From assembly GCF_000143415.4 (NCBI RefSeq), contig NW_003314688.1, positions 1 to 6,656 on the forward strand: a DNA stretch of 6,656 bases, given 5' to 3'. The notes beneath the pieces were generated by a model. That model had not been told where the DNA came from. It saw only the letters and a program-made list of their open reading frames with translations, and searched no databases. This stretch comes from Selaginella moellendorffii (Eukaryota; Plantae; Lycopodiophyta). This document shows, in pieces, positions 1 to 6,656 of this stretch. The translations under genes were made by a program, and so were the position numbers. The number at the start of each line of letters is the position of its first letter. Position 1 is the stretch's first letter.

Positions 1-1
1 A

Positions 2-1142
2 TTCTTACGAAAGGCGTGGTGTCAAATGCTCAAGGTTGCTTCTTCGGCAGGAGAAATTCTCCAGGTAGAGTTAAAAGTTTTGGAGCTTGGTGCTATCTTT
101 CTTTATCTCTTTTTCTTGTTTTCTTTGCAGGCATTCATGGATCTGGAGGGAGCAATCGACGAGGACTGGATCTCTTCCTCGTACGAGTCGATCGAGCAAG
201 TTGGCAGACTCATCGGCATTCAGAGAAAAAATCCCCCCTGGATCCCGCAGACCTCCGCTGCTGTTGCTCTTCGACTGATGGTCTTTGACTCTTCGATCGC
301 CTACACCGAAGAACAAAAGCAGCAGCTCATGGACAGGCAACGAAGAGTAAGCCATCCATCCATTTCGCGTGTTCTTTTGCTTACTTTTTCCTGAGTTTTT
401 ACTTTCGTTCGTGTTTTTAAGTTGAGAATCGGTCCTTACGCTTCTCTCCTTCCAGGTTCCAATGAGAAGATCGAAAGGAGAGGCCCGCGAAGTTTTATAC
501 GAGGCTGGTAGTACTAGGCCGGCAGAAGGAGAGGAAGACAAAGAGACCAAGGAGGCAGAGTTTAATTCCCAAGAGGAGGAGCTACCACCACAGTTTTACG
601 AGAGGAGTGGTGGTGACTTTGGAGCTCATCCATCTTGGAGCGCTCGGCAAGAGAGCGCCGCCGTTCTACTGGAAGAGGAAGAAGAAGATGATGAAGACGA
701 AGACAAGAGGCTGGCAATGAAAGCTAGTGGCGAGAGTGACGATAGCTCGCAGATGAACTGGGAAGGCCAGGATTCTTTCGAGGAGCTCGAGCAGCCAGGC
801 CATGGAAGCCTCCATCATCTGGAAGAGCTGGAGATGGAGGAGGAAGAGGATGGATTGATGTTGGAAGAGGAGGAGGAGCTGAGTGACGAGGAAGAGGAGA
901 GCGAGGAGGAAGAGTTCCAGCAGGAAGCGTCGAGCAGTGATACGGACGAAGAGCAAAACAAGCACGACAACTTGGTGGTGGCCAAGAACTTGATCAACAT
1001 CAATGCGAGCTTGGAAGAAAGCGGTGATGATCTTCATACTGCTGCTGCTGCTAGCAAGATCAATGGGGGTTCCAGCGAGAGAGTTGTAAACTGCGGCTTG
1101 ACAAGCGAGTTAGAGTTTGAGCGGGGGACGTATGAGGAGTGA
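2..1142 (+). CDS. RLT: 3' part of a homeobox-DDT domain protein (RINGLET RLT1/RLT2-like, ISWI partner); exons <2-64, 131-346, 456-1142; 5'-partial
   Basis: The spliced translation is FLRKAWCQMLKVASSAGEILQ|AFMDLEGAIDEDWISSSYES...PPWIPQTSAAVALRLMVFDSSIAY...RR|VPMRRSK..., followed by a long D/E-rich tail and TGA at 1140-1142. It matches my recollection of the conserved C-terminal block of plant RLT proteins (RKxW..KL..ASS.EELLQ.LT.LE.AI...; PWIPQTTAAVALRL..LD.SI.Y). Two phase-0 GT-AG introns join the ORF-track ORFs 26..394 and 462..1142 in frame. Confidence 0.8.
65..130 (+). other. Spliceosomal intron (66 nt, phase 0) of the RLT-like gene
   Basis: Donor CAG|GTAGAG, a T-rich body and acceptor TTTTCTTTGCAG|G. 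Removing it deletes a hydrophobic stretch (VELKVLELGAIFLYLFFLFSLQ) that interrupts the RLT motif. Confidence 0.85.
347..455 (+). other. Spliceosomal intron (109 nt, phase 0) of the RLT-like gene
   Basis: Donor AGA|GTAAGC and acceptor CTTCTCTCCTTCCAG|GTT. Splicing puts 456 in the frame of the 462..1142 ORF. Confidence 0.85.
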
Positions 1143-1493
1143 GTGGAAGTTTTACTTTCTCCCATACAGCGAAGGTGTCTCTCTTCTCGGCGTACAGTTT
1201 GATTTGTGAATTCAACCCTGACTTTTGTATGTAATTTCTTCTAGGAAAAAAGGTTTCTTTATTCTATGAATTTGCTTTGAGATGTCCTAGATTAAACATT
1301 TGACAGAAGGGGGCACAGAAGAGACTCGTTCTTCAATTTCTTGATACTTAAAAAAGTGATGTGTGGGATTATGATTGAACGCTTCTAAGTCAGAATCTGT
1401 GCTACATGCAGAGCTCTCTACCTGATTAAGGTTAGGAAGAATTATAATCCATGTTTGAATTAAATCCAGAATATTCTTATTCTAGAGTCTTAG

Positions 1494-1517
1494 AACCCTA
1501 AACGTCCAAACCCTAAA
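1494..1517 (+). promoter_or_regulatory. Two telo-box elements (AACCCTAAA at 1494-1502, AAACCCTAAA at 1508-1517) just upstream of the second gene
   Basis: They match the plant telomere-repeat-like telo-box AAACCCTA (the second exactly, the first lacking one leading A) and end 16 nt before the ATG at 1534. A TATA-like TATAAT sits at 1443-1448. Confidence 0.6.
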
Positions 1518-1533
1518 GCTGAGGGTGGCATCG

Positions 1534-3194
1534 ATGGATGCATCGGAACTGGAGAGTGACGCAGCGGCATCGGAACTCGAGAGTGATGCAGCGGCTGAGT
1601 TGATGCTTTTGGAAGAGGAGCCATTCGTGAGAGGTAGTGTCAAAGCTTACCTTGCTCAGCCTATGAGGGCTGTGCCTGCTGGGGTTGACGCATATCATCG
1701 TTTCCTGTTGTCGACATCACCTCCTCTGGTGGATCTCTGCCCGCAGGACTTCGAGACGGACTGCTGGGATAGCTTCCTCTGTGATATGAATTCTTGGTTC
1801 TCTGGGCTTCCAGACAGGCCTCTGAGATCAAAGCCAGAAGTGCTGATCGATCTTCATTTCAGAGGTTTCCTTTTCTCAGCGGCTGACACGGTGCTGCAAC
1901 TCGTAAAGGGACCCAAGGATGTGTGTGCTGGCATGGCGAGCTATGCCATTGGGAACTGGATAGGTGCGCCGGAGCTTGTGGTGAGCAGCAAGGGCCATAG
2001 CCCGCTTGTTGTTGGTGTCATGGTGGGGGTCATTGACACGGGAGCAGTTGCGAGGGTCTATGCTTACATGCTGAGCAGTGGTTCTTCGTTTGGGGTCGTC
2101 TCATCCTACGCAGAGACGAAGTTTTGCGCGCGCTTGGACAACCGGTTTCTCTTGTCAGACCCTGTTCCACTTCCGCTTATCGGCATCAGGTTTCTGATTC
2201 ACATGGCTACTGGACACAGGGTGCAGCAGAGTACCAGGCCACTACCTTCTCCACGAGGCTTTGCGTCGCGCTTTGCGATGGGTGTCTTTGAGACGTGCTG
2301 CCATGTCGCAGGGGTGCATCGCATTGCCAAGATGGTCCACGAAGTGGGCAGCTTGGAGGCTCGGGATCTTCAGATTCTAGAGTTTTTGTCCGGGGCCACG
2401 GGAAGGATTTCCGCTGTTTACCGTGCTCTGTACAAGGGCAAAAACGTCGTCGTGAAGATCACGGACTTGACCACAGGTTAAAAGCTTATTTCTACCAGCC
2501 CAGAGCTTTCACCAAATTGTGATTGGCTTTTGCAGGTGTTACAAGTGTCCAAGACTGCTTGATGAAGTGTGTGAGGGAGGTGGATGCGTACATTCGGCTG
2601 CATAAGCTGCAGCGAACTTGTATCCCTTGCTTGTTTGAGTATGGGTTCTTGTGCGGCGGGATGTTCTTCTGTGTGGTGATGTCGGATGCTGGCAACTCGG
2701 CAGGAGAGGGGTGGTCGCCGGTCGATCAGGACGAGGTAGAGGCCGTCGTGTCTCGAGCACGAAAGGCTCTTGAGAGCTTTCATGCTCGTGGAGTGGCCAT
2801 GGGTGACCTTTGCGTCGAGAACATACTTGTTTGGCCACATGACAAGAGAGTCTCCATAGTCGGCTTTGAGGAGTGCCTGGTGGGTCCAGCTTGTTCTAAG
2901 GTGGCCATGGACAACGATATTATTGCTCTTCGCGAGTGTGAGCTTGTGTTACAGCAGATGGTGTTACAGGAGATGGCGTCCATGAAAGCGACGCGCTCAC
3001 GAGACACGAGGGGTACTGCCACAGCGGACTGGGAACTCTGGCTTGCAGACGTGGTCGATTCTGCCGAGTCTGGTGTGAATCTAGAGGATACAGAGGAGAC
3101 AGAGGATACAGAGGATACAGAGGATACAGATACAGAGGTTTGTTTCAGCTTTACTGCTATTAGGTACTTATTATGTCTTGCAGGAGTAAGCTGA
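1534..3194 (+). CDS. REase-fold (PD-(D/E)xK-like) plus atypical protein-kinase-like fusion protein, Crinkler/CR-effector-like, probably catalytically impaired; exons 1534-2476 and 2536-3137 (+3184-3189), or 2536-3194 if the last intron is not spliced
   Basis: The ATG is at 1534 (the ORF track starts at a GTG). The 59-nt intron 2477-2535 joins ORFs 1525..2481 and 2523..3194 in frame, inside the kinase N-lobe. Kinase motifs: Gly-rich FLSGATGRISAVY (2383-2421), VVVK Lys (2455), alphaC Glu in REVDAY..L..LQ...IP.L..YG (2577), H..GVAMGDLCVENILV (2781-2831) and IVGFEE (2856-2873). N-terminal domain motifs: WDSF (1765), helix Glu (1837), GAPELVV (1963), VVGVMV (2008) and AVARVYAYM......FGVVSSY..TKF..R.....LLSDPV (2044-2166). 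Confidence 0.75.
1540..1593 (+). repeat. 27-bp tandem duplication (2 copies, ASELESDAA x2)
   Basis: GCATCGGAACTGGAGAGTGACGCAGCG and GCATCGGAACTCGAGAGTGATGCAGCG differ at two synonymous positions. Confidence 0.9.
2477..2535 (+). other. Spliceosomal intron (59 nt, phase 1) in the REase-kinase gene
   Basis: Donor ACAG|GTTAAA and acceptor TTTTGCAG|GT. Splicing removes the TAA at 2479-2481 and restores the continuity from the beta3 Lys to the alphaC Glu (VVKITDLTTG/VTSVQDCLMKCVRE). Confidence 0.85.
3084..3137 (+). repeat. 9-bp coding tandem repeat (GAGGATACA)n encoding (EDT)n
   Basis: There are five full units (one is the variant GAGGAGACA) plus a partial GATACAGAG, ending exactly at the candidate splice donor at 3138. 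Confidence 0.9.
3138..3183 (+). other. Possible short terminal intron (46 nt, phase 0)
   Basis: Donor GAG|GTTTGT and acceptor TCTTGCAG|GAGTAA, with an abrupt shift to T-rich sequence. Splicing would end the protein ...DTE-E-stop at 3189. The length is borderline short. Confidence 0.45.
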
Positions 3195-4173
3195 CGAGGT
3201 TCTCCAGCTTTGTTCTTTCTGTGCTTTCTTGTTTTTTTCTTTTCCTTTGCTGTCTTACTTCTAATCCACTCACAAAGATTAGATATTCATGATATTTCCC
3301 AGCAGTTTGTAGAAGTTTTCTAGAGTTGCTAAGTGGTGGAATAGTGCATGGCCAAACTTCACAGTAAGCAAAGGCAGAGGTCCACAACGAACGGGAAGCT
3401 CCACAAAGCACCTCCACAAACAGCTTGCAGGCCGCCCAACATTTGCTTGTGAACAGTAACTTGTCAAAAGTTGGAGAGGAGAGCAAAGTCAGGTGGGACT
3501 CAGGCATCAGCAGCGGGAGCTGGCACAGACTTTGATGGTGAAGCCAAGGCTTCCTCCACCATCTCTATTCCTGTTGCTCATCTTTGCCTAAGAGGGTGTT
3601 GTGTGGAGGGTTCTTGTCTTTGAGGTGTTAAATTTGATTATAGTGATCACAGGCTTTAGAAAAGCTCGAATTAAGACGGTTCATTGATGAGGATAGTTTG
3701 AACAGGGCTACGGCCTGGAAGACAGGAGAACATCATATTATACATAGTAGAACATACAAGATGTTCACATTCTAGCTGACTGCCAGGACTTCCACCAATG
3801 CATGAAAGAACTGATTGCCACCTCCTGTGTTGCCACTGCAAAGCATTAGGACGCATTTGTATATTCTAGGCATCTTCTATGTACTGCGTGGCGCCTATGC
3901 CATTCACTTTTTTGACAGAATTTCCAGGAATGTTTGCTGTGGCGGTGGCGTCAAAGGGACTCCACCACTGTGTTGCTGGCTACGGCTGCTAGGTGAAGAC
4001 TGAAAAGGGAACAATGGCTTTCCTCACAACTCATATGACAAGGCAGCAGGTTTAAACCAATTAGTTTATGAGAGAAGCAAAAGATTTTTCCTGCAGCTTT
4101 TCTCTTTGGATTGCCTTGCCAAGCCTATGTGGTTTTCCAGAGGCAAAAAGGGATTGAATTCGTGAAGTTTAGT

Positions 4174-4273
4174 NNNNNNNNNNNNNNNNNNNNNNNNNNN
4201 NNNNNNNNNNNNNNNNNNNNNNNNNNNNNNNNNNNNNNNNNNNNNNNNNNNNNNNNNNNNNNNNNNNNNNNNN
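4174..4273. other. Assembly gap (100 N)
   Basis: Exactly 100 N, the usual placeholder for a gap of unknown size. Confidence 0.99.
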
Positions 4274-4648
4274 GGGGCATTTGAGTTAATTATGCAATTC
4301 AATATTCAATCTCTGAATTTTTTATTTCATACAAAGCCAAATGTATAATGCATAAAGTTGGACATGTTATGGCTAACACTTTGTTAAGATCTTGTGGTAC
4401 ACTTGCACTAATCACCCATGACAATGCTTTATGACTTGCACAATATTATGAGATATCACTTCTCCCACTTATAATTGCATATGTTTTAACTCCATTTCTT
4501 GTGAAAGATACTTTTGTTTTTATATGATGTTATAATTGCTTATGCTCAAAAGACAAAAGTAAAGACATAGTCATGGTTGTGACATTTGTTACTCGGTGTG
4601 TGATGAGATTACTTATATGTATTGGTGTCATTAGTGTTTCCTAGATTA
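4274..4648 (+). mobile_element. Degenerate Ty3/gypsy pol fragment (end of RNase H and the following linker)
   Basis: With one frameshift it reads IQSLN/FISYKAK...HVMANTLLR (4304-4389), resembling LQ.YDF.I.YK.G...H..ADALSR. It is followed by AL*LAQYYEISLLPLIIAYV, which resembles the post-RNase H 'AQ..D' linker. Confidence 0.5.
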
Positions 4649-4748
4649 NNNNNNNNNNNNNNNNNNNNNNNNNNNNNNNNNNNNNNNNNNNNNNNNNNNN
4701 NNNNNNNNNNNNNNNNNNNNNNNNNNNNNNNNNNNNNNNNNNNNNNNN
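4649..4748. other. Assembly gap (100 N)
   Basis: Exactly 100 N. Confidence 0.99.
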
Positions 4749-5145
4749 TGGGTGGAGGCTTTCACATCAATAATTCCTTATAGGTACTACCGTAATGGAA
4801 AGTTATGATATAAAAATTCTTTAGAGTAATAAGAGTTTTTTATCCTTCTTTTGGAATAACCATCAAGAGGTTCATTTAGCATCAATTCATCAATATTCAC
4901 TTTCCAAACTTTTTTTTATAATAAAAGGTCCTTTATTATTTTCTTTATATTGGTTGATATATGTTTAAAAATCTATCTTTTATTGCTTTGCTTGTTGCCA
5001 TATATTGCCTTCTACAATTGCATTAGTATAATCATGCTAAATGTGATTTTGAGACTTCTCCCCTTTATATAATACTCTTTCATATCTTTTTTATATCTCT
5101 TGTATTCTCTACTTTATCTTTTTATTTTCACCTCTATTTCCATCA

Positions 5146-6656
5146 TTGTTTTTTCCATTACTTTTATATTTTTTTTTTCTATTCTTCTATTCCCTTTTCA
5201 AATCACTTGAATGGTTTTTAGTTAAGGCAATTGACCAACTCAAGAAGGAGTATAGTGATCTCTTCACCTTTGATTTATCTTTTGAGGCTAAGATTGCATC
5301 CATCATCCAATTACAATTAAAGATGATTGACCAATTAAGATTTATTTTTAGCAATCGTTATAAAAAAAGATTAAAATCTTATATGCAAATAGTAAGGAAA
5401 TGTTAGAAAAAAATGTTATTTGAAAGTATTGAAATCCTTGAATATGTGAGCTTTATCTTGTGATAAATTTTAATAGGAGCATTTAATTTTATATAAACTA
5501 TTATGTAATAAACGATATAACTATATCAAATATGTACTCTCTTCCTGATACTATTGTTTGGGGAAAAATCATTAATTCACCAAGTTAAATCTTGTTTCTA
5601 AATACTAAGAAGTGTTAATGGTTGGGGAGAAAAAATACTTTTTATACATTATTTGATTTATACGAGTTCTTGGTGATGCTATTTGATTTGAACAATACTT
5701 TAACATAATAGATGATAAATAAAATTCTTTATAATATGTCAAAAATGGCATTGACTTCATCGATGATATCTTCATCCTTTTGAAAAGGATGTGGGAGGAG
5801 CACATTTGTGATATCCACAAAGTGTTGAAAAATTCATGGAAAGATAGTTTGAAATTAAAGTGATTAAAATGCACATTTGGGTCTAAAGACATGACTTATC
5901 TTGAGTATTATATTTCTCCTGAAGGCTTGTAAGTTAATCTTGATAAATTTATGTCATCAATCATACTTGCACCATTCCAAATGTTGATGAAGTTATCAAC
6001 ATTATTTTGTATTTGGTCTTAGGACTGCGAGTAAGCATTTAAGAAAAGTGTTAACAACTCTTTCAAAATTGGCAACTACACTTAATTTTTTATCTTGCAT
6101 ATATATACTTTTAGTATTGGTATCGAATGTGTCTTGATGCAAGAGAGCACAAGTGTGTTTAGTTAACATCATCCCATTGCATACATCAACTATATTACAA
6201 CTAATAAAAGTGAATTATTCCACAATAAAGAAAGTCTCTCAAAAAGTTTCATACATACTTGCATGGTTCTTTAATGTTGCTAGAGAGTAATTATATTACA
6301 ATCACTTTATTATTAAAGTGAAAGAATTTGAATAGTCATATTTTATAATAGAATTTAAAGCTTTAAATATATAACTTCGAGGTTATTTATTGCTTGGGGA
6401 GTTCTATAGTTGATATTAACATCTTTTCTTTAAGCTTCTTTTGCTTCTTTGTTTTCTTCTTATGTTCTTAATAAGCTTATTATTCTAATATTGTTGGATT
6501 TTCTAGATGAGAATATAGTGTCATTAGTAGTTGTTATGTTTGATATTTAATGTTTATAAGGTGCAAAAACTAAATTTACCTTCTCTTGACAAGGTTCATG
6601 AGATTTAAAAGGTTGAGTTGTGCATTTAAAGACTTCATTATAAGTTTAAGAATTTT
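5146..6656 (+). mobile_element. Highly degenerate Ty3/gypsy LTR-retrotransposon pol relic (pre-RT linker, reverse transcriptase, RNase H); it probably extends left to ~4749 and runs off the right edge
   Basis: Motifs are collinear on the + strand, with stops and frameshifts: LKKEYSDLF (~5239), KEMLEKNVI*KY*NP* (5394), NRSI*FYINYY..N..T...MYSLP (5472-5546; consensus DGS.RFC.DYR.LN..T..D.YPLP), FTKLNLVSKY*EV (~5576), YEFLVMLFDLNN (5661; YEF.VMPFGL.N), FIDDIFI (5756; YxDD), KCTFG....TYLEYYISPEGL*VNLDK (5867), FILHIYTFSIGIECVLMQ (6089; F.L.TDAS..G.GAVL.Q), HPIAY (6170), KKFHTYLHG (~6242) and **NLKL*IYNFEVIYCLG (~6346; RW.L.LQ.YDFEI.YRPG). RT followed by RNase H with these motifs is gypsy-type. 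Confidence 0.92.

Follow-up and report, generated by a model that had tools for sequence, protein, structure and literature searches.

A candidate disarmed relative of Crinkler/Spok-type nuclease-kinase modules encoded by an expressed three-exon gene of Selaginella moellendorffii

Introduction

Does a plant gene with the architecture of a Crinkler- or Spok-type toxin still encode a toxin? This question is raised by a stretch of 6,656 nucleotides (nt) from the lycophyte Selaginella moellendorffii (NCBI RefSeq assembly GCF_000143415.4, contig NW_003314688.1, positions 1 to 6,656 of the forward strand), hereafter called the window; unless another locus is named, all coordinates are window positions on the + strand. 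A preliminary description, made from the letters alone, had read two + strand open reading frames (ORFs; 1525-2481 and 2523-3194) as a single gene for a restriction endonuclease (REase)-like domain fused to a kinase, and had suggested a role in conflict, such as cell death, immunity, allorecognition or spore-level drive. Here we demonstrate the structure and expression of this gene, the folds and homology of its product and the loss of catalytic residues. On the whole we consider it probable (about 0.7 for the joint statement) that it is a retained, weakly constrained and non-catalytic derivative of a toxin-type nuclease-kinase module, carried as an expressed three-exon gene of a family expanded in Selaginella. 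With this locus, an expressed gene that had escaped annotation joins a scarcely described plant family based on the Crinkler/Spok nuclease-plus-kinase module, which a vascular-plant lineage appears to have kept long after the loss of the residues needed for both enzyme activities.

Two groups of proteins are relevant for comparison. As given in a review that summarises Zhang et al. 2016, modules of REase plus kinase account for about a sixth of the C-termini in Crinkler-type (CR) proteins, and there are reports of CR-type proteins in land plants (PMC5289972). According to the same review, CRN8 of Phytophthora infestans depends on its REase-like region to cause cell death, and its kinase-dead form is a dominant negative (PMC5289972). 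Of the Spok spore killers of Podospora (SPOK2, SPOK3 and SPOK4), SPOK3 consists of a coiled coil, a domain 1, a PD-(D/E)xK domain with a QxxxY motif, a cysteine cluster and an ELK-like kinase; its K240 is needed for killing and its D667 for resistance, its best HHpred match is HsdR of Vibrio vulnificus, and the role of QxxxY in nucleic-acid binding is taken from the same work (PMC6660238).

Structure and transcription of the gene

The gene lies at 1534-3189, has three exons, is expressed and encodes a product of 516 amino acids (314 + 1 + 200 + 1 residues), which runs from an acidic tail through the REase-fold domain, a helical linker and a minimal Bud32/ELK-like kinase domain to a second acidic tail. 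The coding part of exon 1 (1534-2476; 314 codons plus 1 base) covers everything up to kinase strand beta3, exon 2 (2536-3137) continues from kinase helix alphaC through the end of the minimal C-lobe and an acidic tail of EDT repeats, and exon 3 (3184-3348) begins with GAG TAA, followed by 3' untranslated region (UTR) to at least 3348. The coding sequence ends ...DTDTE-E-stop, with the stop codon at 3187-3189. Intron 1 (2477-2535; 59 nt, phase 1) and intron 2 (3138-3183; 46 nt, phase 0) are both of the GT..AG type. As read from the sequence, the acidic N-terminus has no hydrophobic leader and no evident signal peptide. All searches and folds described below were run on exon 1 (1534-2475) and exon 2 (2538-3137/3191) separately.

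Public runs of the same organism were aligned to window 1-4100. In each of X1 and X2, which are Logan contigs of two runs of one study, a single contig (1704 and 1587 nt, respectively) spans 1539/1546-2473, skips exactly 59 bases, resumes to 3135, skips 46 bases and ends at 3348/3237, so that both joints are present in both runs. The upstream gene is present in spliced form in these contig sets too, and its joints were confirmed by raw RNA-seq reads of two further runs from another study (X16 and X17); X1 and X2 can therefore be taken as transcript assemblies. Because intron 1 interrupts a Gly codon after its first base (G|GT), the frame continues across 2477-2535, and the joining of the two ORFs by a 59-nt intron, as originally claimed, is borne out. 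In X1 and X2, the gene reached word depths of 31 and 20, compared with 26 and 23 for its upstream neighbor.

The gene of the nearest paralogue, XP_024540239 (P0001), has a 43-nt phase-1 intron (L001:10926-10968) at the position of intron 1, one residue off, and homology therefore backs the splice independently. In addition, the alignment of exon 1 to full-length homologues covers their first ~300 residues and ends where exon 2 takes over. The end of the gene, previously placed at 3194, has to be revised: intron 2 had been missed, and the last 18 residues as then read are intronic.

The gene is unannotated in the protein collections searched, because no protein equal to its product was found among the matches of a phmmer search against 1.84 billion representatives and public assemblies held no record identical to the product of the exon-1 ORF. 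Introns of 43, 46 and 59 nt give rise to mis-annotation of this family in S. moellendorffii, and for annotation in general it should be noted that introns of 40-60 nt hide real genes in this species. Older annotations of the P0001 locus mishandle its 43-nt intron in two ways, in that P0020 continues into the intron and from there into a frame that is unrelated, and P0021 leaves out a large part of the kinase.

The N-terminal domain and its active site

All motifs quoted in the preliminary description (W..F, PE, VVG, VYAYM...FGVVSSY..T.F..R....LLS.PV and, for the kinase, E..AY..L..LQ...IP.L..YG) are present in the protein. Neither Pfam (E up to 1) nor NCBIfam gave a family for exon 1, and its comparison with the PDB sequences returned no match. 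The evidence on the N-terminal domain (residues about 35-230; 1636-2223) comes from structure and from profile comparison. An AlphaFold2 model of exon 1, based on 15 homologues, reached a predicted local distance difference test (pLDDT) score of 80-90 over residues 150-230 and has an alpha-beta-beta-beta-alpha-beta core (H110-123, E130-133, E148-152, E157-163, H169-182, E186-190). When this model was compared with structural representatives by VIA-align, the nuclease domain of BpuSI ranked first (Z 9.6 over 136 residues), HsdR of V. vulnificus (3h1t) was third (Z 7.8), and DrdV (7.1), 3ijm (6.8), TT1808, EcoRI, EcoR124I HsdR, BsaWI, SgrAI, NucC and Hjc were also matched; about 17 of the 20 top chains were REase-fold nucleases. 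The top rows of a Foldseek search against PDB were also of the REase fold (probability 0.98, best E 0.013). In the ESM Atlas, the first row of the shape search was a Mucoromycota cluster with Pfam Crinkler and Pkinase (template modeling (TM) score 0.53, 209 residues, over residues 27-314), followed by an Ascomycota kinase cluster (TM 0.56) and then by several bacterial HSDR_N clusters. Furthermore, hhalign of the N-domains alone, with the Selaginella clade compared with the algal, fungal and metagenome proteins, gave a probability of 95% (E 4e-8) over a region spanning the QxxxY helix and the following strands. A language-model feature search with exon 1, which we regard as a lead only, placed a SPOK2_N cluster at the top (0.83). 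Because model topology, structure matches and hhalign agree, the assignment of the domain to the PD-(D/E)xK fold, and its homology to intact nucleases, are supported at the level of predicted structure. Thus, the fold proposed at the outset was recovered by several methods.

A degenerate active site was observed in the same domain. At the position of the PD motif, the window protein has P146-E147 (1969-1974), in which Asp is replaced by Glu, whereas the algal, fungal and metagenome relatives have the Asp-type PD. Strand beta3 (VVGVMVGV; 2008-2031), which according to the alignments and the model corresponds to the site of (D/E)xK in relatives, contains no acidic residue and no Lys; ExK is kept in several relatives (EVK in P0031, EQK in P0016, EIK in P0015 and EGK in P0014), and its acidic residue is missing in all Selaginella members examined. 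In the counterpart of the QxxxY helix, identified by alignments and hhalign, the window protein has R174-x3-Y178 (2053-2067), compared with QxxxY in most algal, fungal and metagenome relatives. The catalytic D...(D/E)xK set of the PD-(D/E)xK superfamily is absent from the aligned window protein. Judging from these alignments, the nuclease active site is lost in the window copy and its Selaginella clade.

The kinase domain

The kinase N-lobe (residues about 272-314; 2347-2475) was recognized by alignments and by structural N-lobe matches for residues 270-314. It contains a degenerate glycine loop, with one Gly left where some relatives (P0014 and P0032) have GxGxxG, and the beta3 Lys K308 (2455-2457). 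Exon 2 supplies the alphaC glutamate (2577-2579), which is invariant in the family alignment, the catalytic loop H-ARGVAMG-D-LCVE-N (2781-2822), which aligns with H-x-x-G-x-x-H-G-D...N of the relatives and keeps the catalytic Asp and Asn, and G-F-E (2862-2870) in place of DFG, the metal-binding Asp having been replaced by Gly. The NCBIfam LanKC model recognizes the catalytic loop of exon 2 (E 1.6e-7). The beta3 Lys and the alphaC Glu are kept in the algal, fungal and metagenome relatives as well, which have DFG, DFE, DLG or DLE at the position of GFE in the window protein. Thus, of the full residue set of an active kinase, the Lys, Glu, Asp and Asn are present, and the glycine loop and the DFG are not. 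The change of the DFG Asp to Gly is common to P0001-P0006 and P0009, and P0013 keeps the Asp. Several paralogues have lost the catalytic-loop Asp or Asn, both of which are retained in the window copy. Outside Selaginella, two Haematococcus lacustris sequences in one 90%-identity cluster, P0012 and P0032, read IIGFGHA and IIDFGHA, respectively, at the DFG position; from these sequences, either the Asp/Gly change that marks the Selaginella clade would recur between near-identical proteins or a sequencing error is present.

Past the DFG position there are only about 40 structured residues; in the P0001 model, whose kinase part has a pLDDT of 80-93, they make up one long helix. On exon 2, Pfam Pkinase scored E 0.17 and 11.7 bits against a cut-off of 31.7; its best score on any family member was 4.5e-11, and Pfam Kdo was matched by 6 of 16 family members. 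The P0001 model matched at least 500 kinase chains, with CurKC, PAK, CASK and PRPK/Bud32 near the top and no preference for plant receptor-like kinases (RLKs). The hallmarks of eukaryotic protein kinases (ePKs), namely an activation segment, helices alphaF to alphaI and scores above the Pfam Pkinase and PK_Tyr_Ser-Thr thresholds, are absent. Because of the weak Pkinase scores, the short C-lobe and the lack of RLK preference among structure matches, the kinase is minimal and lies outside the standard plant kinase families, which agrees with the earlier view of a short-C-lobe kinase unlike plant ePKs and RLKs.

Comparison with Crinkler, Spok and minimal kinases

Compared by architecture and shape, not by sequence, the window protein has the same module of a REase fold followed by a kinase as Crinkler/CR effectors of the Crinkler-RHS type. 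What it shares with their C-terminal toxin module is the fold and the domain order, not an active enzyme. No Crinkler header (ubiquitin-like (Ubl), PF20147, LxLFLAK type) was recognized in exon 1 by Pfam at E up to 1, and residues 1-75 are modeled as helices, not as a beta-grasp. Unlike CR effectors, the window protein has no evident signal peptide, no nuclease ExK and no DFG Asp, and it is the product of a resident host gene with introns.

With Spok it shares the order of a PD-(D/E)xK domain with a QxxxY-type helix and then an ELK-like kinase, and the HsdR structure 3h1t, the best HHpred match of SPOK3, is its third-best structural match (see above). As with D667 of SPOK3, the catalytic Asp of the kinase (in GDL) and the downstream Asn are present, the DFG Asp being Gly. 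In contrast to Spok, there is no N-terminal coiled coil, no domain 1 and no C-x3-C-x13-C-x5-H-x7-H cluster; the only cysteines and histidines of the linker form CC-H-x4-H-x6-H (ETCCHVAGVHRIAKMVH), which is not conserved in P0001. The nuclease Lys K240 of SPOK3 has no counterpart, and Pfam SPOK gave no match to the window protein at E up to 1. The likeness to Crinkler and Spok that had been pointed out therefore holds for structure and architecture, as seen in the Atlas cluster with Crinkler and Pkinase, the HsdR match and the shared domain order.

Bud32/PRPK, Kdo/WaaP, RIO and LanKC kinases likewise have a very short C-lobe without an activation segment, and CurKC and PRPK were among the best structural matches of the P0001 kinase. 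However, the window kinase, which is fused to a REase-fold domain, reached no membership-level score for any of these families. CASK, whose chains rank 5-8 among the P0001 matches, has Gly at the DFG Asp position as does the window protein, but its family and context are unrelated. On the basis of its residues, the window protein is best described as a disarmed relative of the Crinkler/Spok-type module that would work like neither the demonstrated Spok nor CRN8.

Relatives in Selaginella and beyond

The exhaustive phmmer search, made with exon 2, returned 17 proteins. Ten of them, including the nine best, were from S. moellendorffii and named 'hypothetical' or 'protein kinase domain-containing'; the others belong to three green algae (Tetrabaena, Monoraphidium and Haematococcus), one fungus (Orbilia brochopaga) and two metagenome contigs. 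A word-indexed search with exon 1 gave no match, and word-indexed searches with family alignments (whole, and N-domains only) gave just known members and generic kinases. The taxonomic range therefore rests on the single exhaustive search with exon 2. When cluster members and matches of a later search are included, S. moellendorffii has at least 10 loci or haplotype pairs of this family. P0001, the nearest relative, is 35% identical over exon 1 and 44-47% over exon 2. The paralogues (XP_024540239, EFJ21524, EFJ38190, EFJ16840, EFJ30599, EFJ38177 and others) have the same architecture, intron position and Asp-to-Gly change as the window gene, which differs from them as a separate locus without shared synteny and with long acidic tails, and from several of them in retaining the catalytic Asp and Asn.

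In the exon-2 tree, the window protein pairs with P0001 (84/91), and a group of Selaginella, green-algal and JGI-metagenome proteins is separated from a group of Orbilia and ENA-metagenome proteins (90/92). The tree is otherwise mostly unresolved (1 of 12 branches starred), and for that reason no donor or direction of transfer was drawn from it. The horizontal origin suggested earlier has lost ground, as relatives in green algae make a recent transfer unnecessary, with the reservation that the tree is poorly resolved. No relevant paper linking Selaginella with Crinkler, or Spok with Crinkler, was found in the literature.

Synteny was absent between the window locus and the paralogues on both haplotypes. 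P0001, the candidate for shared synteny as the nearest paralogue, was rejected because its flanking genes differ: it lies between p450 and peroxidase genes. Other paralogues adjoin HEM4/GTPase or ribosomal L29 genes. A link to transposons had also been suggested; no flanking inverted or direct repeats of the transposon type were found around the gene, which speaks against it.

Selective constraint and likely function

The ratio of non-synonymous to synonymous substitution rates (dN/dS) was measured on pairs of paralogues. It was 0.44 for the haplotype pair P0006/P0018, 0.44 for P0019 and its other haplotype (L004), 0.63 for P0001 and its own other haplotype, and 0.22 for P0013/P0034. Pooled over three DFG-less pairs (20 synonymous and 35 non-synonymous changes) the ratio was 0.53, which is below neutrality at p 0.02. 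A dN/dS of about 0.5 among the paralogues is, as far as such sequence comparison goes, a sign of weak constraint and not of free decay. In the P0009/P0019 paralogue (L004:6001-7487 and L005:6001-7494), the haplotype other than that of P0019 has a 4-nt insertion in the coding region that the annotation bridges with an 'intron'; this haplotype copy may be frameshifted.

Taken together, we suggest that the protein does not cut nucleic acid and would be at best a weak, atypical kinase. Its most likely role is non-catalytic, that of a module for binding or regulation which descends from a former toxin-type enzyme and would be kept under weak purifying selection. Several observations weigh against this. 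In the raw RNA-seq runs X16 and X17, the upstream neighbor was covered 15-50 fold and the nuclease-kinase gene was essentially silent, so that its expression is conditional. Against the window, the transcript contigs show three coding changes (I264M; S106A and D125G of exon 2), all of them non-synonymous, a number too small for a selection test; together with the silence in two runs, they fit relaxed constraint or early decay. The overall pLDDT of the exon-1 model is 69, which is moderate confidence, Foldseek with this model gave no PDB match at E 1e-3, and the one protein encoded by exons 1 and 2 was searched and folded exon by exon. Finally, the window copy keeps the Lys of beta3, the Glu of alphaC and both the catalytic Asp and the Asn. 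CASK-type GFG kinases can work without Mg, and because of this and the four retained residues, the window copy may by analogy have some kinase activity in spite of its GFE.

The main rival of a retained module, although improbable on present evidence, is a decaying relic, a copy that is transcribed but has no function and is turning into a pseudogene. Such a copy would agree with the loss of catalytic residues in both domains, the ratio of 3 non-synonymous to 0 synonymous coding polymorphisms, the silence in two RNA-seq runs, the missing annotation and the degraded AT-rich region downstream. However, the frame of 516 codons is intact over two correctly spliced introns, and the transcript depth equals that of the neighboring gene in X1 and X2. 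Moreover, the Asp-to-Gly change is common to at least seven diverged paralogues, all with open frames and with many of the non-catalytic motifs retained, and the pooled dN/dS of 0.53 in the DFG-less clade is significantly below 1.

It is less probable still that the locus is an active toxin-type element, either a Spok-like toxin-antidote or a Crinkler-like executor, in which the nuclease kills and the kinase controls it, with a role in immunity, allorecognition or spore drive. The domain order and the QxxxY-type helix are as in Spok and in CR modules of REase plus kinase, the family is multi-copy and fast-evolving (omega about 0.5), expression is condition-specific, and the kinase keeps its catalytic Asp and Asn. 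On the other hand, the protein has neither the Spok cysteine cluster nor the Crinkler header, and killing by Spok3 needs the catalytic Lys of the nuclease and resistance the catalytic Asp of the kinase (PMC6660238). The nuclease has lost its ExK and has R for the Q of QxxxY, and in the kinase the glycine loop has degenerated and Gly has replaced the DFG Asp; the window copy is therefore unlikely to be a nuclease toxin in the manner of Spok or CRN8. The conflict, cell-death or drive function originally envisaged is weakened by the same losses, and the case calls for caution, as a toxin-like architecture does not imply toxin activity.

Starting from a retained, non-catalytic module, Selaginella is a place to ask what role disarmed modules have, as regulator, decoy or antidote. 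One speculative possibility, to which we attach low odds, is that the catalytically dead Selaginella clade might be a dominant-negative antidote or decoy retained by the host, which would pair with active REase-kinase toxins and neutralize them, or guard against them, whether these are intact paralogues of the same genome or Crinkler effectors of pathogens. A reported precedent is the kinase-dead CRN8, which is dominant negative on CRN8 cell death (PMC5289972). If true, the clade would amount to a toxin-antidote or effector-decoy system of a plant, derived from a Crinkler/Spok-type module.

That the gene was recently acquired by horizontal transfer from a fungus or an oomycete, or that it is contamination of the assembly, is very improbable. 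In favor of this, Selaginella is the only land-plant genus in which the family was found, relatives occur in a fungus and in metagenomes, and the best shape matches in the ESM Atlas are fungal. Against it, the introns (59 and 46 nt) are of host size and intron 1 is common to a 35-45% identical paralogue, telo-boxes precede the gene, and a spliced host gene lies 391 nt away on the same contig, with both genes in transcript runs of the same organism. In addition, housekeeping genes surround the paralogues on both haplotypes, and the proteins of green algae cluster with those of Selaginella and not with the fungal ones (90/92). Residence in the host, as argued before from intron size and telo-boxes, is thus strengthened by the many paralogues and by co-expression with the neighbor in plant RNA runs.

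Promoter region, neighboring gene and other features

Two telo-box motifs AACCCTAAA are present at 1494-1502 and 1509-1517, 17-40 nt upstream of the ATG, where 0.10 matches would be expected by chance; the telo-boxes previously noticed were thereby recovered. The 46 nt at 1464-1509, which include the first telo-box, also form the end of a much more abundant transcript contig (depth 166 and 123, compared with 31 and 20 for the gene). The remainder of that contig has no match to the window, and the boundary lacks a splice-site dinucleotide. This contig probably represents another locus sharing this promoter or UTR segment, or a haplotype difference.

A repeat search revealed repeats in both acidic tails: an in-frame tandem duplication of 27 nt in the N-terminal tail (1540-1593), which encodes ASELESDAA twice, and 9-nt repeats encoding the acidic (E/D)-T tail (3083-3130). 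Rfam gave no match.

The 3' end of the upstream gene occupies 1-1142 and ends 391 nt before the ATG of the nuclease-kinase gene. Its exons extend to 64 and over 131-346 and 456-1142, its introns (65-130 and 347-455) are of the GT..AG type, with joints confirmed by the raw reads of X16 and X17, and it is expressed in all four runs; its product ends in a long acidic tail rich in Asp and Glu. A conserved plant chromatin gene, RLT, had been placed about 390 bp away. A spliced and expressed gene is indeed found there, but neither Pfam nor the Atlas supported any family for it, and its identity as RLT is unconfirmed. In the raw reads of this gene, many positions show about 50% alternative alleles, and about 40% of the reads carry a 3-nt deletion at 836, an allele mix as expected of two haplotypes.

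In the part at 4290-6656, beyond two 100-N scaffold gaps (4174-4273 and 4650-4748), the GC content falls from about 50% to about 25%. Pfam gave no match for the short retroelement-like ORF pieces in this downstream part. By eye, the pieces at 5735-5860 and 6167-6271 resemble the reverse transcriptase and RNase H of a Ty3/gypsy element full of stops.

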